From the sequence record NC_016163.1: a stretch of DNA of 64,000 nucleotides. One strand, given 5' to 3'. Made by a program: the position numbers and the translations under genes. Below the pieces are notes generated by a model. That model saw only the letters and a program-made list of their open reading frames with translations, was not told the origin of the DNA and made no database searches. Positions 3,507-16,863 of this stretch are shown in pieces. Numbering within the stretch: the first letter of the stretch is position 1; each line of letters opens with the position of its first letter.

Positions 3507-3523
3507 TTAGTCACCTCTTATTG

Positions 3524-3540
3524 ATATATTATTTTAATGA
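3524..3540 (+). promoter_or_regulatory. Putative early promoter
   Basis: ATATATTATTTTAATGA. Confidence 0.7.
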
Positions 3541-3607
3541 ATAGTCGGATGTAAAGTCCTAGTATGTACTATATAATTCAATAATAATTTGATAAAGGAA
3601 TTTTAAA

Positions 3608-3694
3608 ATGGCTACTAAAAAATTAGGCGTTAAACGTTGGGAACTTATTGCTGTATCAGTTATTCTGTTCGCATCAATGTTTATGTGTAACTAA
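3608..3694 (+). CDS. 28-aa single-TM peptide (not in the ORF track)
   Basis: MATKKLGVKRWELIAVSVILFASMFMCN; AAAGGA RBS, promoter upstream, terminator downstream. Confidence 0.6.
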   Translation: MATKKLGVKRWELIAVSVILFASMFMCN

Positions 3695-3702
3695 TTCATA
3701 AG

Positions 3703-3730
3703 AAAGAGCATCTAACAATGCTCTTTTTTT
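3703..3730 (+). terminator. Intrinsic terminator
   Basis: AAAGAGCAT-CTAACA-ATGCTCTTT followed by a T-run. Confidence 0.75.
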
Positions 3731-3796: not shown

Positions 3797-3976
3797 ATGT
3801 CTGATAAAGAATCTAAACCATCTGAAGAACAACTTCGTAAAGAATTTGAAGAGCATATGAAAGATATGTTCCCTAGTGTTGGTTTGGAAATGCAGGAGAA
3901 TACTAATTACTATTATTCAACTGCTGCCAATGTCGGTTGGGCGTTTTATCGTAATATGCGTCTCGGTTCTCTTTAA
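3797..3976 (+). CDS. 59-aa hypothetical protein (not in the ORF track)
   Basis: MSDKESKPSEEQLRKEFEEHMKDMF...RLGSL; AAGGA RBS. Confidence 0.7.
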   Translation: MSDKESKPSEEQLRKEFEEHMKDMFPSVGLEMQENTNYYYSTAANVGWAFYRNMRLGSL

Positions 3977-4017
3977 TATTTCCCTTTCTACTAATAAACA
4001 AATGGAGTAATACTCAT

Positions 4018-5202
4018 ATGACCGCAACTGCCGTAATTTCTAATGCTTCTTCAAATGCTGTTAAATACCTTGAGCAAGGTCTTCAGAATTTGAAGAATGC
4101 GGCGATTGTAGTAAATAAAGATACTACTTTAGAAGCATCTACTAGTGCTTTGGTATCTAAAGTAGCTGAGTATGATCAAAACAATGCGATTACTATTTCT
4201 CGTATTCTGAGCTATAGCTCTACTTTCAACGAAATGATTCGTACTCAACTAAGTAATATGGATGTAGCTAACCGTTACAATCAGATTACTTCTCTGTTTG
4301 ATAGTATCCGTGAAGATACTAAAAAACAAGTAGTTTTGGCTGAATCCGGCAAGGTATCCATCTTTGATAAACTCGGTTTATGGTTTGGTGATTTCCGCCG
4401 TGGCTCAGTAGCGAAACGTTTCGGCAATATTAAGCGTATTTATTCCGATGTTTCTTCAGCTCTCAAAGATCAACTTGACCGTGAGCAAGTAATCCTGGAT
4501 AGCTATCAATCTTTCCGTCTTTCAATGAAAGAAGCCGAATTAGCGGCATATGAGATCTTTCAAACAATCAGCGCTAAGCGTGAAGAAGCTAAACAACTGA
4601 TGGACACTGCAGATAATGCAGTAAATGCATCAACTGATGATGGTGCTGAAAAAGCATCATTGGTATTAGCCCGTGATAAAGCAGTCATGGATTACAAAAA
4701 GCTGGATAAAGACTATCAGATTGCTAAAGATCTGGCAGAAAATCTTAAAGTCGGCTATAATACATCTGAAGTAGTATTTGCCCGTATTGAGCAAGCTTCC
4801 GATGTTAAAGAGCGCATCTTCCAGCAATCTGTAATGTTCTTCTCCACCAATGAGACTGTATTTACTGGTCTTACTTCCGCATTTGTAGTATTTAGTGGCC
4901 TGAATGAAGGTACAAATACTCTGAATGCTATGAAAGATGGTATGAATAAGGGTCTGGAAGATTTGGCTACTGTCGGTAATACTTCTTTAGAGCGTGGTAT
5001 TCAAGCTGGTTATGGCGCTACTATCGATGCTAAATCAGTTAAAATGCTCCTGGATGCAGTAGTAGATTATCAGGCTAATTCAGTTAAACTGATTAATGAA
5101 GCTCGTAAGTCTGCTACTGAGAATGCTAATGAGATTGAACGCCTTACCAATGAAGGTAAATCCCGTTTCATTGAGCTGTCTAATCAGGTAGCAACTGCTT
5201 AA
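4018..5202 (+). CDS. TelA-like helical protein (proteobacterial 'cell surface protein' family)
   Basis: All-helical 394 aa. Motifs YQIAKDLAENLKVGYNTSEVVFARI, FFSTNETVFT and GYGATIDAKSVK match a recalled bacterial family encoded upstream of DUF6384. Confidence 0.7.
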   Translation: MTATAVISNASSNAVKYLEQGLQNLKNAAIVVNKDTTLEASTSALVSKVAEYDQNNAITISRILSYSSTFNEMIRTQLSNMDVANRYNQITSLFDSIREDTKKQVVLAESGKVSIFDKLGLWFGDFRRGSVAKRFGNIKRIYSDVSSALKDQLDREQVILDSYQSFRLSMKEAELAAYEIFQTISAKREEAKQLMDTADNAVNASTDDGAEKASLVLARDKAVMDYKKLDKDYQIAKDLAENLKVGYNTSEVVFARIEQASDVKERIFQQSVMFFSTNETVFTGLTSAFVVFSGLNEGTNTLNAMKDGMNKGLEDLATVGNTSLERGIQAGYGATIDAKSVKMLLDAVVDYQANSVKLINEARKSATENANEIERLTNEGKSRFIELSNQVATA

Positions 5203-5208
5203 GACTGT

Positions 5209-5231
5209 AAAGGGGATGAAGTATCCCCTTT
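5209..5231 (+). terminator. Intra-operon hairpin
   Basis: AAAGGGGAT-GAAGT-ATCCCCTTT. Confidence 0.65.
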
Positions 5232-5260
5232 ATTTTTAATACTAATAATGGAGAAAAAGA

Positions 5261-6583
5261 ATGTCTAATCAGGCAGTCTTAGATGTAATCAATAAAATTG
5301 ATGCAGAAAGAAGTAAATACAAACCAACTATGGAAGAATTTCTGATTTCTTCTCAAAAGAATCAGGAAATCCGTACTCAGGTTATGAAATACTTCTCTCA
5401 AAACGGAATTGAGATTACTGATAAAGCGGTTGATAATGCGGTTAATGAATATCTATTTAAACGCTTCGACTATAAGGAAAGTAAAGTAGTTGGACTTCAG
5501 GACTTCATTAGTAAGTTCCTATTCTTCATGCTTGCGGCTAAAGAAAAACAGCGTCAGATCATCATTACTTTGTCAGCTATCATGATTGCAATTGTAATTG
5601 CTATTACTGGCAGTGTAATGATAAGTAATCATAAAGCTAAGCAAAACGAGGAAGCTTATGCTTTGATTCAATCTGACTCAGTCAATTTTGTAAAACGCAT
5701 TAAAGATATGCGTGTATACACTAATGGGTTATTCATCACACTTGCCGATAAGCTTGATGAGTTAGATCATCGAGTTAAGTCAGTAAATGAACTTACTAAA
5801 CCTGAAATTAAAGATAGTAAAGATTTCTATACCGCCAATTACCAACCTCTTAACGAGAAGATTTCTCATGTTGAACAAACTGTAGAAAGCTTTAAACGCT
5901 ATGGTACAGTAATTAATGGTAGCGATTATAAGAAGCTTCAAGATAATCCTACGGTCATTGAAGCTAACGATAAAGCCTTGACTAGTATTCGTACATTTGC
6001 ATCTGATGCAAATTCTCAAGTAACTAATCTTGCAAAAGTTATTGACCGAGTATTAGTTTCTTATCAACTGGTAGCTCAGTTTGATTCAATTAAAGCACGT
6101 TATTCAGTTATGTTGAATGATCCTGCTGCAAAAGAATTCACTGAATCATCTTTGGCAACGATTAAGACTTATGCTGAAGCTGGTGATAAATCCAGTATGC
6201 AGAGTGCAGTAGATAGGCTTAACAGCTATTACACTTTATTCAAATCTCCTGCTAAAATGGAAATCTATGTAGGTAACGATAACAAATCAGGTGTAGAACG
6301 TACATTTGATAGCAGTGGTAGTAAAAAATGGTATCTGATAGTTCAGGTTAAAGGTTATGATAACCACGTCATGAGCTATCCAGTCCTTGATCAAGAATCT
6401 GGTAAAGTAGTAAATGCTAAGATTTTTGGCATTGAAGTACCAAGAGCCGTTTATCAGAAAGTTGGTTCTGAGAAGAAATCAACTGGTATGATCAAACAAC
6501 GTATCGTAGCTACTAAAGATGCAAATACCATGCAGTTCAATAATAAAATTTCTGCAAACGACGGCTTTATTACTAATTGGTAA
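5261..6583 (+). CDS. DUF6384-like single-pass membrane protein
   Basis: N-terminal YFSQNGIEITDKAVDNAV...KRFDY, TM IIITLSAIMIAIVIAITGSVMI, long coiled coil, C-terminal WYLIVQV...FGIEVP...EKKSTGMI beta domain. Confidence 0.72.
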   Translation: MSNQAVLDVINKIDAERSKYKPTMEEFLISSQKNQEIRTQVMKYFSQNGIEITDKAVDNAVNEYLFKRFDYKESKVVGLQDFISKFLFFMLAAKEKQRQIIITLSAIMIAIVIAITGSVMISNHKAKQNEEAYALIQSDSVNFVKRIKDMRVYTNGLFITLADKLDELDHRVKSVNELTKPEIKDSKDFYTANYQPLNEKISHVEQTVESFKRYGTVINGSDYKKLQDNPTVIEANDKALTSIRTFASDANSQVTNLAKVIDRVLVSYQLVAQFDSIKARYSVMLNDPAAKEFTESSLATIKTYAEAGDKSSMQSAVDRLNSYYTLFKSPAKMEIYVGNDNKSGVERTFDSSGSKKWYLIVQVKGYDNHVMSYPVLDQESGKVVNAKIFGIEVPRAVYQKVGSEKKSTGMIKQRIVATKDANTMQFNNKISANDGFITNW

Positions 6584-6586
6584 GGA

Positions 6587-7849
6587 ATGAAAATAATGAG
6601 AATTCGTAACGACCGTGAAGCTCGTAATTATCTTAAGGGCTTGATTGATCAAACAGAAGCACTGATCAGAGAGAACCATGATGCATATCGGAAATTAGAA
6701 CAAAAAAAGACGAATATTAATGGTGAAATATCATCAGAAATTCGTAAAGTTGTTTCTGATTTTTTCAATAAAGGTGTTACACATTCGTCTCAGAGTGTAA
6801 TGACTATTCTTAATCGCCATAAAACACATGCTGAACTGATTAAATCTGATGCGGATAAAGCTTCTTTATCTTTAGCAACAACAAAAGCTCAACGTGAGGA
6901 AACTGCCGTTAAGCTTATTAATGAAAAACAGCGTGTAGCCAATGAAATCAGTTGTGATGATAAAATTGCTAAATTAGCTATCAGCATCCAAACTGTTAGT
7001 ACACTTAACAAAGAAATTGATCGCCGTATTTATATCTATGATAAAAATACTATCTTCAATACCCTTTCCAGATATCATAAAATGGGATATCATGATGTAG
7101 ATAAATATCCTATCATTGGTCGCTGTTTTGGTTTATTGAGTAAATGGTTCCATTTTGACGAGAACTTCTCTACTTATAAAACCATTTCAGAAATTAATGA
7201 TCAGGTAGATAGTACTGAAGCTTCTCTGGCTAAAGATATTGAAAGACGTACAAGATCTTTTGAAACTAATAGTGAAATTGATAACTTAACTTTTACTATT
7301 AGTGAACTGGATTCAAAAATCGACTCACTACGTTCTACTGCAAGTCGGTCTTACAATCCAGAGAGTGAAGCTTATAAAGAACTGTATGATGTATTTATGA
7401 GTCGTGCTGGTTGCTTTATTTCCAATTCTCTAAAAGATTTACTTTACAAGTATAACGAAGTAAGAAAAGAACTGGAAGTACTTTCTAGTGAAGCTTCCAA
7501 AATCCGTCAGCGTCATGAATCAGTACAGAAGACATATCGTACTGTAAATGGTCGCAGCAATAGCTATAATCGGGTAGTGGAAGTAAATGACATTAGTAAT
7601 ACTGTCATTACTTTAGCTTTACTTGATTCTTTGAGTAATTCTATCAATAGTATGAGCAGCTATTCTAATAGCGCTTACCGTGCAGCGGAAGAGGCTGCTG
7701 CTGAAGAAGCTCGTCGTAGTTCATATAGTTCTTCAAGCAGTTCTTCAAGTAGCTGGAGTTCTTCTTCCTCTTCATCATCTTCAAGTAGTTTTTCTTCATC
7801 TGATAGTTTTGGTGGTGGAGGTGGATTCTCATCTTCAGATAGCTTCTAA
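6587..7849 (+). CDS. Coiled-coil protein with poly-Ser / GGGGF C-terminal tail
   Basis: Heptad-rich; ends SSSDSFGGGGGFSSSDSF; starts 3 nt after the DUF6384-like gene. Confidence 0.8.
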   Translation: MKIMRIRNDREARNYLKGLIDQTEALIRENHDAYRKLEQKKTNINGEISSEIRKVVSDFFNKGVTHSSQSVMTILNRHKTHAELIKSDADKASLSLATTKAQREETAVKLINEKQRVANEISCDDKIAKLAISIQTVSTLNKEIDRRIYIYDKNTIFNTLSRYHKMGYHDVDKYPIIGRCFGLLSKWFHFDENFSTYKTISEINDQVDSTEASLAKDIERRTRSFETNSEIDNLTFTISELDSKIDSLRSTASRSYNPESEAYKELYDVFMSRAGCFISNSLKDLLYKYNEVRKELEVLSSEASKIRQRHESVQKTYRTVNGRSNSYNRVVEVNDISNTVITLALLDSLSNSINSMSSYSNSAYRAAEEAAAEEARRSSYSSSSSSSSSWSSSSSSSSSSSFSSSDSFGGGGGFSSSDSF

Positions 7850-7857
7850 ATAAATTT

Positions 7858-7885
7858 CCCCTATCCTTCTTTTGAGGGATAGGGG
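7858..7885. terminator. Hairpin, CCYWTATCC family
   Basis: CCCCTATCCTTC-TTTT-GAGGGATAGGGG. Confidence 0.8.
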
Positions 7886-8993: not shown

Positions 8994-10544
8994 ATGATTG
9001 GCAAGCTCCAACGTCAGTTTATAGCGGCATTCCAAGAAGATAATCCGGAGAAATTTAATGAAGATCTGATCTTTATGCGTAATAAAGAATCAAAAGAACT
9101 TCATCACTATTTCTACGATGTCTTCAATTCCCTTAAGTTAAAAGGTATTACTTTCCTAAGTTCTGAGACTATTACAGACGAGACTGAATTCCATAAGTAT
9201 ATTCCTAAAAAGAGTATCCCAATTGAGAATAGTCGTCTTGAACTAGTAAGAGCTAAGTTTCGTTTAGAAGCGGATGGAGAGTCTAAAGAGATTGTAGTAC
9301 AAATCTTTTTCCCTAAGCTTATTGATAACTATTTCTATGAGATTAAAGGTTCTCGTTATCTTGCGGTATATCAAGTAACAGATAGAAACTTCTATACTTC
9401 TTCTGATGCATCCGTATATCTTAAATCTCTTTTAATGCCATTAGGTTTATATCTTAATAGCAAAGGTAATGCACCTATTGAGATTGTAGATGAAAATGAA
9501 GAAATTGTAACTCTTCCAAACAAAGAGTTTGTACTTGATTTCTTTAAATTAAAGAAAAAATCTACACATAAAAATGCTTTCTATTATTATTTCATCAAGT
9601 ATGAAGGTGTACAGAATGCGATTGATGTAATCTTTGGTAATACAGATGATCATAAATTTGTATTTATTACTGAAGAAAGAGAGAACTATGAAGGTTATTG
9701 CCGGATAGAAATTCGAAAAGATCTCTATATCTATTGCTGGAATAATTTCACAAATACCTATAAACATTTGGTAAGTACTTTATATCATGCATTAAAAGGT
9801 ATTCGTAAATCTTCTGTCATTGATTCTGTTGATTATTGGAAACGTAAGATTCTAAATAATGCTACGGCTAAGCTTGAAAAAGCTGATCGCACAATGATTA
9901 GTCTTGAACGTATCTTAGACAATCGTACTAAAAAGAATCTATCCAGAGAAATCGTTAACCCTGAATTACGTGAAGATTCATATGGTGTAGTTCGTTGGAT
10001 GATGTATAATTTTGACAATAGTGATCGTCCCGATTTTCCAGATGCGTCATTAGTCAATATTGATCCAGTAAATATCTATAATCGCCGTATTCGTTTGACA
10101 GAATATATGATTTATCCTTTGCTGACAAAGCTTAGCGACTCATCATATCGTATTCTAAATAGCCGTAATATCAATATTAAACGATTAGAGAATGTATTCA
10201 GTACTATTGGCCCGAATTACATTCTGAAGTTCCTTAGTGGTAATGAATTACTTCGTTACTATAATGCTACTAGTTCTTTAGATCTTTTCAGTACTCTTAA
10301 ATGGTCTGCCCGTGGTAATCAGGGGTTAGGTAAATCTTCTAGTACTGTAGCAACTAAGTTCCGTGGCCTACATCCAAGTTATCTTGGCGTAGTTTCACTT
10401 AATGCTGCATCTGCAAGTGATCCTGGATTAACGGGTACTTTCTGTCCATTGTCGAATAATTTCGGCGATATGGAATTTGTAGATCATTCTAATGAAATTC
10501 ATTATATTAATGATGTTTTAGATATCTACACTGAAGAAGACTAG
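8994..10544 (+). CDS. rpoB: Non-virion RNA polymerase beta subunit, N-terminal part (AR9 gp105 / phiKZ gp123-like)
   Basis: EKFNEDLI, FFPKLIDNY, SLERILD, RRIRLTEY and RGLHPSYLG...DPGLTG (equivalent to beta RDVHPTHYG). Confidence 0.92.
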   Translation: MIGKLQRQFIAAFQEDNPEKFNEDLIFMRNKESKELHHYFYDVFNSLKLKGITFLSSETITDETEFHKYIPKKSIPIENSRLELVRAKFRLEADGESKEIVVQIFFPKLIDNYFYEIKGSRYLAVYQVTDRNFYTSSDASVYLKSLLMPLGLYLNSKGNAPIEIVDENEEIVTLPNKEFVLDFFKLKKKSTHKNAFYYYFIKYEGVQNAIDVIFGNTDDHKFVFITEERENYEGYCRIEIRKDLYIYCWNNFTNTYKHLVSTLYHALKGIRKSSVIDSVDYWKRKILNNATAKLEKADRTMISLERILDNRTKKNLSREIVNPELREDSYGVVRWMMYNFDNSDRPDFPDASLVNIDPVNIYNRRIRLTEYMIYPLLTKLSDSSYRILNSRNINIKRLENVFSTIGPNYILKFLSGNELLRYYNATSSLDLFSTLKWSARGNQGLGKSSSTVATKFRGLHPSYLGVVSLNAASASDPGLTGTFCPLSNNFGDMEFVDHSNEIHYINDVLDIYTEED

Positions 10545-11741: not shown

Positions 11742-14294
11742 ATGGCAAATAATGACTTACAAGAAATGCTAAAACGTTTTAGATATCCGTTAAATTCAAC
11801 TTCTATGCAACCTATAACTGGTAAGCAAGAAGGCGCGGTATCTATGTGTAAGGCTAATCTAGTAACTTTACAAGAGTTACAAAGAGAGGCTGATTCAGCA
11901 TATACAAAATTTGATATAAGTGTAAAAGAAGCTAGATCTTCTGTAGGTAATACAATAAATCCTAATATACCCGCTTCTAGTGTTACAGCCCAATATTTAA
12001 TGGGTCGTATAGATATGGGTGTAAGTGTAGCCGTACGTCTTCAAAATGAAATAAATAAAGTACTAAATCCAAATCTACCGGATTATGTCAAGATGGCATA
12101 TACCCCAAGTGTAGTAGATTTTGGAGGAGTAACACAGGCTTTTAATACATATTATACAAAGCTTAAAGATATTGAGAAACGAGCAGCTAAGATAAAGGAA
12201 GATAACAAACCTGAAATCAAGGAAGCTACAGTTTCATCAGCTAATACTGAATATTCTCTAGAGAATAAGACTTTCCTGAAGTCTATGTATGATATTTCTA
12301 TACAAATGATTCTTCCAGACAATACTCAGAACGATATAACTCAATATATTACAGATATCCTATATTCATTTAATGCGGATAATATGGTAATGCCAATTTA
12401 TTCTGTAAAAATGAAGATGCCAGCAACGCTATATGATTCTATAAGAAAATATTTTGAAGGAATAAAATGGTATATTACTGTCAAATTATATACTAAAACT
12501 TCTGATACTAGTCAAGATCAATTCGCTATACCTTCTTTAATTAAAGATTTTGAAGAATTAGTAGCTATTGATCCTACATTTAGTCCCGGAAACGATGATT
12601 CCAATAGACCTGAAGGTGTTCTGCCTATTTATACCATGAAAATGGATTTTGTTTCTGCTAAGGGGAATGCATTAAACTCCATAGTAAAAGCGAGAGTATT
12701 TTCTAACTGTAAATTAATTGATGTTATTTCAGCCCTATGTAGTCAAGTCAAGCAGGAATATGAATCAACTGGTAATGTAGACTCAAGTAAAGAGATTAAG
12801 TATACTATTTCTCCTCCAGATAATACTCAAACTTATGAGCAAATCATAATAAAGCCTGGTAGTTTTACGGCTACTCTTCATGCTTTACAAAGAGAGTATG
12901 GAGTATATAAAACAGGTATTCAAGTACTATTTGATGGAAATCATAATATAAAAGATACTAATGGTGTTAAGCCAATTAGTTATTTAACTATTACGGATAA
13001 AGGTGGTACTGCTCCTGCTACAAATAATATAACTGATGCTTTATTTGAAGTAGTAGATCCTAAATATGTAAAAAATATGATTCATGAAACAGGTTACTTA
13101 ATCAATAATGATACAAGTAGTGTTACTGTTAGAACTTTTGAACCTTATCACCTTGTAAAAACTAACTCCGACAGGCTTAGTAGAGGTGATTCAGTAAGGG
13201 TAATGAGTACTTCTCAGAACTCAGCTTCTAGTACTGTATGTGACAATCCAAATGATTTTTCTACATACAATCAAAGATTTTATTATAGTAAATTTGATAA
13301 TCCGTATGCATTAACTCAGTTGCAAGATAACATCCGTGAAAGAAATCAGATGTTAACTATAGAAGCTAGAGACATAGATATTTTTACTTTTAATGCTAAT
13401 CTAAATTATCAAGTTAAATTTTATAGTAGAGACGATGAAACTGGATCAGGTGCATATAGACTCAAAAAATATGCGGCTTATTTCGGATTTACTCGTTCTG
13501 GTGTTAAGAGTAGGGTAGAAACATCTGCCGTTTTTGAATTCGGAAATATACCTGAATTGAGAGAAAATGGGGTAACAGCCCCTAGGAAGACTTACGCAGA
13601 GAAGGTTGGAAGCACTAATAAAAGTGCGTCAAATTCAACTACTCTAAAAGGTGCTACCTCTAGTGGTACAGGTGGTGGTTTTACTTCTAACTCATCTAAT
13701 ACTCCATCAGTTCCATTTAAAACTAACTTTAGAAATAAAAAAGACTATTTAGGTAATACCATTCCAGAAACTATACCTGCTAGTTACAAGATGTCTCAAC
13801 AAACTACGTTCGAAGATGTCTATGTAACTCAAACAGGTACTGATTTATATAAAGGTAATGGGTTAGCAAATAATTTTGCATATTTTATAAATGCTCAAAG
13901 GTTTGCATCAGAAATTCTAGATCCTTTATTTAATTCTGAAGGTAAATCTAAATTAGTTGATTTTTATAAGTATGAAACAGATGGTTCTTATGGCGCTAGT
14001 GCTCACTTAGTAGCTTTAGCTGCAGATGTATCATTCAATAAGAGTGGTGATGAATTAATCAAGTCATTTATCAAGATATCTAATATGGGTCTTGATTTTG
14101 ATCAGTTAATTCTTCAAGGCGATGGTAGTTCATGGAAGTACATTCATATTGGTAAGAATATGAATGAAACTAATCGTAAACAAGTAATACTATCACCTAC
14201 ATCAGTAAATAATGACTACAAAGTAATCAATAAAGCCTTAACTGAAGAAGATGTACCTAAACTTAAAATAACTGAATTTAGAAAATACTTTTAA
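11742..14294 (+). CDS. Virion baseplate hub-like protein with C-terminal M15-type peptidase domain
   Basis: 850 aa behind a late promoter; Ser/Thr/Gly linker, then SAHLVALAAD...FDQLIL...YIHIG. Confidence 0.65.
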   Translation: MANNDLQEMLKRFRYPLNSTSMQPITGKQEGAVSMCKANLVTLQELQREADSAYTKFDISVKEARSSVGNTINPNIPASSVTAQYLMGRIDMGVSVAVRLQNEINKVLNPNLPDYVKMAYTPSVVDFGGVTQAFNTYYTKLKDIEKRAAKIKEDNKPEIKEATVSSANTEYSLENKTFLKSMYDISIQMILPDNTQNDITQYITDILYSFNADNMVMPIYSVKMKMPATLYDSIRKYFEGIKWYITVKLYTKTSDTSQDQFAIPSLIKDFEELVAIDPTFSPGNDDSNRPEGVLPIYTMKMDFVSAKGNALNSIVKARVFSNCKLIDVISALCSQVKQEYESTGNVDSSKEIKYTISPPDNTQTYEQIIIKPGSFTATLHALQREYGVYKTGIQVLFDGNHNIKDTNGVKPISYLTITDKGGTAPATNNITDALFEVVDPKYVKNMIHETGYLINNDTSSVTVRTFEPYHLVKTNSDRLSRGDSVRVMSTSQNSASSTVCDNPNDFSTYNQRFYYSKFDNPYALTQLQDNIRERNQMLTIEARDIDIFTFNANLNYQVKFYSRDDETGSGAYRLKKYAAYFGFTRSGVKSRVETSAVFEFGNIPELRENGVTAPRKTYAEKVGSTNKSASNSTTLKGATSSGTGGGFTSNSSNTPSVPFKTNFRNKKDYLGNTIPETIPASYKMSQQTTFEDVYVTQTGTDLYKGNGLANNFAYFINAQRFASEILDPLFNSEGKSKLVDFYKYETDGSYGASAHLVALAADVSFNKSGDELIKSFIKISNMGLDFDQLILQGDGSSWKYIHIGKNMNETNRKQVILSPTSVNNDYKVINKALTEEDVPKLKITEFRKYF

Positions 14295-16083: not shown

Positions 16084-16863
16084 TTATTTTTTATCTGCTT
16101 CTTTAGCCGCTTTAGCTTCTGCTGCTTTATCAGCTGCTACACCACGAGCACCGTGGGTAGCTTTAAACAGAGCATGAACAAACTTGGAAGACAGAGAAGC
16201 AAGTTTAGAAGCTTGACGCTGAGCTTTGTTCAGAGTAGTAACAACAGCTGCATCACCGCCGCCAGCAGAGGCAGCTTTAGCCTTCAGGCTTTCTGCAACT
16301 TTCTTAACACGATCGTTAGCAGCTTTAGCCATAGTTTCTACTTTAGAAACATCAGTAGCCAGGAACTTAACGCCTTCACCTTTTTCAGCAGCGGCGCGAT
16401 AAGCAGCCAGACCTTCCTGATAAGCAGCATCGAATTCATCTTTACCAAGAGCATTGGCAGCTTTTTCGATAGCGGAAACCAGTTTAGGGGCATTTTTAAA
16501 GCTTTCTGGAAGTTCTAGAGTTTTAGCGCCCAGAGCAGCTTTCAGACGTACAACTTGTTTGCTAATGAAAGCAGAAACGGCATTGTACACTTTCATGATA
16601 GCTTCATAGGCACGTTGTGCCATAGCTTTCACTTTTTCTTTAACATTACCCAGGAAACCAGCTTTCTTATCTTCTTTAGCAGCGTCACCGCCTTCTTCTT
16701 CAGTCAGAGCAGAAAGTTGTTTTTCCAGTTTATAGTCAGCAACCATAATGGATTCATTCAGAATCGCGGAATCACTAATAACGTCAGTCAGCTCAGCAAG
16801 GGCTTCAAACAGGGAAGGTGCTTCTACTTTCTGGGTATTGGCGGATTCTAAAAACATAGCCAT
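16084..16863 (-). CDS. Abundant Ala/Lys-rich internal head protein
   Basis: Acidic propeptide with ILNE/ALTE, amphipathic helix, strongly biased codons. Confidence 0.7.
   Translation of the reverse strand: MAMFLESANTQKVEAPSLFEALAELTDVISDSAILNESIMVADYKLEKQLSALTEEEGGDAAKEDKKAGFLGNVKEKVKAMAQRAYEAIMKVYNAVSAFISKQVVRLKAALGAKTLELPESFKNAPKLVSAIEKAANALGKDEFDAAYQEGLAAYRAAAEKGEGVKFLATDVSKVETMAKAANDRVKKVAESLKAKAASAGGGDAAVVTTLNKAQRQASKLASLSSKFVHALFKATHGARGVAADKAAEAKAAKEADKK

Follow-up and report, generated by a model that had tools for sequence, protein, structure and literature searches.

TelA proteins (Pfam family PF05816) are tied to envelope-stress and tellurite phenotypes, and their mechanism has been obscure for decades. 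A second kind of envelope system, the PspA/LiaH scaffolds, is made under membrane stress. Here we describe three adjacent genes, g190, g191 and g192, of the Yersinia phage phiR1-37, a jumbo phage of 262 kb whose host is Yersinia enterocolitica. They lie at positions 4018-7849 of the stretch of DNA that we analysed (64,000 nucleotides of record NC_016163.1, hereafter the window), and this segment is 100% identical to positions 128018-131849 of AJ972879.2. We have named their products proteins A, B and C. To judge from sequence, g190-g191-g192 represent a complete copy of a rare, self-contained three-gene module of bacterial type, whose first protein is predicted to adopt a TelA-like fold. The features of the locus are as follows:

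4018-5202, plus strand: g190, encoding protein A (394 amino acids, aa); open reading frame (ORF)
5207-5233, plus strand: stem-loop followed by a T run, likely a partial terminator; found by a hairpin scan and annotated as a terminator in the record
5261-6583, plus strand: g191, encoding protein B (440 aa), a DUF6384 protein; ORF and Pfam PF19911
6596-7849, plus strand: g192, encoding protein C (417 aa); translation, and comparison of start codons with phage relatives
7858-7885, plus strand: hairpin 3' of g192, a rho-independent terminator; annotated in the record and visible in the sequence as an inverted repeat

An initial annotation, made from the letters of the window, had described three closely linked genes, and three ORFs on a single strand are indeed what the locus holds. 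They are separated by 58 nucleotides (nt) between g190 and g191, a spacer that contains the stem-loop, and by 12 nt between g191 and g192. In the record all three are annotated as hypothetical and carry no product name; their neighbours are flagged as virion proteins and g190-g192 are not. The same annotation knew of no functional description, and in the literature searched we found none for the module or for DUF6384, nor anything on the NCBI names of the homologues. In the phiR1-37 papers examined, g190-g192 go unmentioned outside a table of RNA-seq values.

After scanning one genome per species, we obtained at least 444 bacterial relatives, and analysed the best 80 loci together with a few others. 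With family profiles, B was recognised immediately after A in 85 of 86 loci and C after B in 78 of them, all the cases with a missing B or C being contig ends. The proposal that bacteria carry these three families in this order, annotated for instance as ‘cell surface protein’, is hence confirmed far beyond chance. In Pseudomonas citronellolis and Polymorphum gilvum, for example, a DUF6384 gene comes next after the homologue of A, and the gene behind it encodes 450-470 aa without a Pfam match. Spacing in the bacterial loci is tight, with frequent overlaps of 4 or 8 nt. The loci come from alpha-, beta-, gamma- and delta-proteobacteria, Trueperaceae, Deinococcaceae, Nitrospirae, Chthoniobacteraceae, Bdellovibrio and Sulfurovum, and most copies of the module are chromosomal, in ordinary genomes. 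Regarding the flanks, recurrent genes were found only in Stappiaceae, where the entire neighbourhood is syntenic across genera, so the unit consists of these three genes and nothing more. A fourth conserved gene was considered and rejected, as no flanking gene is conserved outside Stappiaceae. In P. gilvum (locus L003), recA and alaS lie upstream of the module.

A profile search of 1.84 billion cluster representatives returned 669 members of the A family at E <=1e-3 and 261 at E <=1e-30, the family being small and sharply bounded. We also compared the three phage proteins with PADLOC 2.0 and obtained no match, while the Pseudomonas counterparts gave only noise (E 0.03-0.05). According to this result and to the synteny in Stappiaceae, the module does not sit in a typical defence island.

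The membership of g192 required separate evidence, since direct BLAST and hidden Markov model (HMM) comparisons between g192 and the bacterial C proteins were not significant. With hhalign, the probability was 96-97% when the low-complexity tails were included and ~1-6% when they were left out; because the scores depend on the tails, we have not counted them as proof of homology between the bodies of the proteins. Three independent features nevertheless tie g192 to bacterial C. The first is its position, strand and size, the third protein of the module being characterised by ~400-550 aa, a central non-coil motif and a Gly/Ser tail. In g192, which aligns collinearly with bacterial C, the central motif is at nt ~7010-7210, and there are a poly-Ser stretch and a conserved C-terminal tail at nt ~7727-7846. 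The second is the central motif, whose HMM ranks g192 first among the 257 six-frame ORFs of the window (E 0.046), in register. The third is a terminal motif made of glycines, an aromatic residue, any residue, Ser or Thr, three residues and a terminal Phe (...G-G-F-x-[ST]-x-x-x-F), usually repeated. This motif is present in 64 of 3630 ORFs from the bacterial loci, all of them in position C, and in one of the 257 ORFs of the window, which is g192. Its tail ends in a repeated F-S-S-S-D-S-F unit, and its last ten residues are those of the copy on the plasmid pMPPla107. The putative coiled-coil body of g192 has diverged past ordinary detection, and its homology is not significant when taken alone.

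The third protein had been presented as a coiled coil of 420 aa with a poly-Ser stretch and a Ser/Gly tail. The stretch and the tail stand, and the length does not: the ATG at 6587 reads ATA in all three phage relatives described below, so we place the start at 6596, as in GenBank, which gives 417 aa. As for the coiled coil, the only signal consists of weak matches to coiled-coil families, which hint weakly at such a structure. We detected no TPM domain, signal peptide or transmembrane helix in g192. One of its relatives (P0122) bears the JGI name ‘uncharacterized membrane protein YgcG’, evidently on account of the tail. Scans of g190 and g192 against Pfam, PHROGs, NCBIfam and PADLOC gave nothing usable, and searches of PDB sequences with g190 or with profiles of A, B and C yielded only noise from helical and coiled-coil proteins.

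The assignment of g191 to DUF6384, already proposed, is well over the Pfam cut-off (PF19911; E 4.7e-26, 92.1 bits, with a gathering cut-off of 25), and 22 of 22 aligned relatives also match above it. g191 has one hydrophobic helix, at residues 100-118 (nt 5558-5614), and one strongly hydrophobic helix is likewise found in 69 of 79 B relatives. The alignment shows conservation at both ends of the protein, in an N-terminal domain (~aa 1-85) before the helix and in a C-terminal domain (~aa 328-440) whose last residue is an invariant Trp. Between the helix and the C-terminal domain lies a variable helical insert, with long versions in the phage, in Pseudomonas, in Massilia and in Enterobacteriaceae bacterium B14. 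Of the single-pass protein with a stalk and a terminal beta domain that had been envisaged, the single helix is borne out; the stalk and the beta domain appear only in a low-confidence structure model (pLDDT 51.6), with a helical middle and C-terminal strands.

Protein A is all-helical, as had been suggested. Its AlphaFold2 model, built from 116 sequences, contains only helices by DSSP (pLDDT 68.6, pTM 0.61) and features a long helical hairpin formed by residues 131-204 and 210-277. The best-conserved part, around residues 270-335, is moderately hydrophobic, and a hydrophobicity scan of g190 found no segment of transmembrane strength. More than 560 homologues with 41-46% identity were found, and those with a name are annotated as ‘cell surface protein’ or ‘merozoite surface protein 3b’.

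The label ‘TelA-like’, also part of the initial annotation, is supported in part: the predicted fold agrees with it, and the sequence does not. The Pfam TelA model does not match g190 even at E up to 10, and none of 21 family members (g190 and 20 relatives) matches it at E up to 1. The same model recognised KlaB of pUZ8002, a relative of RK2 (accession from PMC11261713), at E 1.4e-86, which served as the positive control. An hhalign comparison of the g190 family (alignment A2, 116 sequences) with eight plasmid TelA proteins (alignment A3) gave a probability of 0.3% (E 0.21), and the HMM of A2 scored TelA proteins at 7.2 bits or less, with shuffled sequences reaching up to 8.2 bits. When the g190 model was searched with Foldseek against the viral library BFVD, ranks 1, 3 and 4 were proteins named for tellurite resistance or toxic-anion resistance, that is, of TelA type, with E values from 5e-4 to 1.3e-3 and a best TM-score of 0.55/0.59 over 351 columns; further TelA-type proteins stood at ranks 23 and 43. 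The PDB fold search gave no match at E <=1e-3, and none of the 50 matches listed is named TelA; pore formers of the ClyA family recur among its weak matches (E 0.1-0.6, TM-scores of 0.2-0.35). With moderate confidence, we consider that g190 has a TelA-like predicted fold without being a member of PF05816. Its model describes a soluble, all-helical protein, which would found a small unnamed family.

Some bacterial loci carry reduced versions of the module. In Pseudoduganella (L059 and L065), B is the N-terminal domain alone, with 111-126 aa and no helix, while in Micavibrio (L007 and L020) B stops directly after the helix. Exactly these four loci encode a C without the Gly-rich tail, and all the 67 other complete loci have a full B and a tailed C. 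The B protein of Pseudoduganella being soluble and free of the helix, the N-terminal domain of B would work in the cytoplasm. The joint loss suggests that the part of B after the helix and the tail of C belong together, in what are only two independent events.

Among 50,697 phage records, phiR1-37 is the only one with a homologue of g190. We found three metagenomic contigs that are clear relatives of phiR1-37, and in them all three genes are intact and syntenic. Measured against the window, A is 93% and 88% identical, B 88%, 81% and 95%, and C 76%, 56% and 93%, so that C evolves faster than its neighbours. The last 19 residues of C are nonetheless identical in all four phages. This invariant tail, on a body that falls to 56%, and the synteny in three relatives speak for selection of the module in the phage.

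The module is also present in 11 plasmid records of 0.3-1.4 Mb, mostly Pseudomonas megaplasmids and including pMPPla107; in the two plasmids examined, pNY8709-IMP and pMPPla107, the order is A, DUF6384 gene, C. A neighbour-joining tree of A with bootstrapping places the phage together with two copies from Pseudomonas megaplasmids (L033, and L090, which is pMPPla107). The smallest group that holds the phage includes L033 in 89 of 100 replicates and the pair L033 and L090 in 67 of 100. The module appears to have been taken up by the phiR1-37 lineage, with the nearest copies of its first gene on Pseudomonas megaplasmids. Identity between the phage and megaplasmid A proteins is 38-43%; therefore, either the transfer happened long ago or its donor has not been sampled. 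We looked for a larger block shared with the megaplasmids and rejected it, since only A and B among the proteins of the window match. The neighbours of the module on pMPPla107 (L090 2677-14292) include a StiP-type cysteine protease, a metallophosphoesterase, a peptidyl-tRNA hydrolase and a dCTP deaminase, and are unrelated to the phage neighbours of g190-g192. A link between the phosphoesterase g187 and the metallophosphoesterase of pMPPla107 was rejected as well. So was a second phage lineage represented by four IMG/VR ‘viral’ contigs (L085-L088). In the one examined (L085, 55-61% GC), the module is found at the end of the contig, past genes for a phage integrase and a LysE transporter. The four contigs probably derive from prophages and extend into flanking bacterial DNA, with the module in the host part.

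Published RNA-seq data (PMC4848604, Table S2) show that the module is strongly transcribed. From early to late infection, normalised reads range from 32.7k to 42.0k for g190, from 13.9k to 16.0k for g191 and from 16.3k to 24.4k for g192. The major capsid gene g135 has 0.9k-2.3k, so the read counts of the module are 10-40 times those of the capsid gene; the highest value among the genes looked up is that of g304, with ~300k reads. The three genes are classed as not temporally regulated and are transcribed from 2 min after infection (PMC4848604). Reads drop ~2.5-fold from g190 to g191 and ~3-fold from g192 to g193. The hairpin at 5207-5233 has a 12-bp stem and a T run, and its stem is conserved in two of the phage relatives (L091 and L092), with changes confined to the loop. 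A hairpin after the first gene, and overproduction of that gene, had both been predicted from the window, and both hold, the latter at the transcript level: the A to B read ratio of ~2.5:1 fits partial termination at a leaky terminator. Hence, this hairpin likely stops part of the transcripts and so keeps A more abundant than B and C. The terminator at 7858-7885, which was not picked up by our hairpin scan, marks the end of the module.

The ‘high-expression codons’ ascribed to g190 were not found. Its GC content at third codon positions is 0.289, against a median of 0.241, which leaves it outside the top six, and its use of C-ending pyrimidine codons is at the median. The overall GC content of g190 (0.388) is the fourth of 67 ORFs in the window, and that of the module is 0.35-0.39, compared with ~0.30 around it. 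The top GC content of the 67 ORFs (0.438, with a median of 0.324) belongs to the ORF at 16084-16863, on the minus strand.

Upstream of the module, reads rise from ~50 in g189 to ~33,000 in g190 across a spacer of 41 nt (positions 3797-4017 comprise g189 and the spacer). The spacer has no annotated promoter, the nearest annotated one being at ~3520-3544, upstream of g188. A short motif found upstream of both g190 and g191 was tried as a promoter and rejected, as it is not enriched (6 matches, with 3.1 expected). g188 itself (3609-3730) is an ORF of 28 aa with a hydrophobic core, followed by a hairpin and a T run; it has almost no reads, and the RNA-seq paper places it among the genes with none (PMC4848604).

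What could such a module do in a phage? During phiR1-37 infection, the host genes pspABCD are listed as up-regulated, with values of 2.1 to 3.5, and cold-shock and osmotically inducible genes are listed as well (PMC4848604); the induction of pspABCD indicates that infection stresses the inner membrane. The latent period is 50 min (PMC4848604). The hydrophobic helix of B and the TelA-type fold matches of A would link the module to the membrane. The data show which genes the module contains, how they are conserved and built, how A resembles TelA in fold and how strongly all three are transcribed; the topology, the assembly and the membrane-maintenance role that follow are inferred. B would be an inner-membrane anchor with its N-terminal domain in the cytoplasm, and the abundant, TelA-fold A would assemble at B, on or under the membrane. 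The coiled-coil C, with a flexible Gly/Ser tail and aromatic end-motifs, would link, tether or regulate the assembly. Such an A-B-C complex may maintain or remodel the cytoplasmic membrane under stress, and the phage would make it in quantity from the first minutes in order to keep the membrane working throughout the latent period. We put forward this membrane-anchored TelA-like assembly, keeping the inner membrane functional during infection, tentatively, as a possibility that we judge somewhat better than its rivals.

Several points weigh against it. The function is a putative one, proposed from sequence, models and published transcript data. The likeness to TelA is at the level of the fold and depends on a medium-confidence model, long helical proteins being prone to spurious matches, and the sequence and profile tests of g190 against TelA were negative. 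As the mechanism of TelA is itself obscure, the analogy explains little. In A, no amphipathic or transmembrane element could be demonstrated. The N-in topology of B would derive from a modest positive-inside signal, with Lys and Arg higher before the helix in 45 of 69 B proteins. Finally, N-in places the C-terminal domain of B outside, yet in four loci this domain is lost together with the tail of a cytoplasmic C, which is odd and does not fit the simple model.

In a broader proposal, the module would be a hitherto unrecognised, self-contained scaffold system associated with the membrane of diderm bacteria, with a TelA-fold A that assembles at the inner membrane and a bitopic DUF6384 anchor whose outer domain is functionally coupled to the Gly-rich, Phe-studded tail of the coiled-coil C. 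Very large mobile replicons (jumbo phage and megaplasmids) would bring a copy of their own, as a dedicated membrane platform for maintenance or development; we regard this reading as unlikely. One could also argue that the module organises a membrane site for a large replicon, where A as a scaffold and C would tether or compartmentalise DNA replication or assembly. The extrachromosomal copies do lie on very large replicons (the 262-kb phage and plasmids of 0.3-1.4 Mb), the phage A groups with Pseudomonas megaplasmid copies (with L033 in 89 of 100 replicates), expression starts early and stays constant, and bacterial C proteins show weak coiled-coil matches to SMC and JetC models. However, those SMC-type matches are coiled-coil noise (E 0.02-0.05), family scans of the three proteins revealed neither a DNA-binding nor an NTPase domain, most copies are chromosomal and large replicons carry more cargo anyway. 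We hence doubt that the module serves as such a site.

To about the same degree, we find it improbable that the module acts in conflict, through superinfection exclusion, anti-phage defence or protection against membrane-targeting effectors of abortive infection. A membrane protein with an external domain, made from the start of infection and encoded by a module that is rare and patchy (669 representatives in 1.84 billion) and present on mobile elements (megaplasmids and a phage), would suit this role, and some weak fold matches point to ClyA-family pore formers. These matches are not significant (E >=0.1, TM-scores of 0.2-0.35), and a pore former overproduced constitutively would kill the host early. 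Moreover, PADLOC gave no matches, and the synteny in Stappiaceae is stable across genera, with recA and alaS upstream in P. gilvum.

Less probable still is a control of envelope integrity or lysis timing, in which the module would protect the cell, up to the end of assembly, from the early and highly expressed murein transglycosylase and the membrane proteins of the phage itself. The lysis-type gene g331 is early and among the most highly read genes (PMC4848604), the latent period of 50 min is long, and B has a weak similarity to a holin family (PF09682, E 0.002) over its transmembrane region. That match is under the cut-off and covers only the hydrophobic helix, the window shows no linkage of the module to lysis genes, and the bacterial carriers have no such need. 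Passenger DNA, that is, a horizontally acquired cassette without a role in the phage, would agree with the raised GC content and with the restriction of the module to phiR1-37 among the phage records, and is very improbable given genes that are intact and syntenic in four related phages, an invariant tail, a conserved hairpin and a place among the more highly transcribed genes.

Beyond the module, two other genes of the window deserve mention. g194 (8994-10544) has no product name and no Pfam match, and matches PHROG 2943 (‘polymerase’) over its full length at E 5.8e-102. In g196 (11742-14294), a virion protein of 850 aa, the last ~85 residues weakly resemble an endolysin family (phrog_894, E 8.5e-5).

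Taken together, the analysis establishes a real and complete module of bacterial type, of which the literature searched gives no description. It is a compact and strictly co-inherited unit of three genes. Pfam lacks a family for two of the three, two of the encoded proteins have no known relatives, and nothing but a distant TelA-like fold connects the module with known biology. TelA-like proteins would gain from it a distant structural relative with fixed partners. That the sole copy in 50,697 phage records is strongly transcribed suggests that the phage depends on an imported bacterial membrane function, and the infected cell is a natural place to observe the complex at high expression. The four reduced loci add a checkable hint that the external portion of B works together with the C tail. 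With its striking expression and distribution, the module is a clean and testable lead.

In order to contextualize the module, we compared it with the systems that it most recalls. The analogy with PspA/ESCRT-III made in the initial annotation found no signal in any search (Pfam scans and the fold matches listed), and the resemblance is conceptual: PspA/LiaH scaffolds, which have small membrane anchors, share with the module a general layout, an abundant soluble helical protein with a membrane partner. The further suggestions made there, of a cytoplasmic polymer anchored by the membrane protein that would stabilise the infected cell, exclude other phages or shield uracil-DNA replication, are conjectural; overall, what that annotation observed is confirmed with small corrections, and its interpretation is supported in part. 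The psp operon of the host is itself induced in phiR1-37 infection (PMC4848604). ClyA-family toxins (AhlB/C, SmhB, XaxB, MakA, NheA), which recur among the weak PDB fold matches of g190, are elongated helical bundles with a hydrophobic element; unlike them, g190 has no secretion signal and its matches to them are not significant, and its high constitutive expression argues against a lytic pore former. The tail of g192 resembles, we presume, the Gly-rich, aromatic-ended tails of TPM-domain (YgcG-type) membrane proteins, which we take as a lead, g192 differing from these proteins in lacking the TPM domain. DUF6384 is the family to which B belongs, g191 being a long form with an insert of ~130 residues.

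The closest comparison is with TelA and its operon. The g190 family is tiny compared with TelA, and no sequence relationship between the two can be detected. In pUZ8002 (L095 15790-18664, kilA operon), a partial TelA domain is found in KlaA as well (E 1.7e-10), and KlaC combines four hydrophobic helices with a stretch that resembles TrbC/VirB2 pilin, so the classical TelA operon comprises two TelA-type proteins and a membrane protein. KlaA and KlaC match neither the B nor the C profiles, and the partner genes are thus unrelated to the DUF6384 and coiled-coil partners of g190. Like g190, TelA/KlaB is soluble, all-helical and of similar length (377 and 394 aa, respectively), and the top structural matches of the g190 model within BFVD are TelA-type proteins. 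Like klaA-klaB-klaC, the module is a three-gene operon in which a gene for a protein of TelA or predicted TelA-like fold stands next to a gene for a membrane protein.

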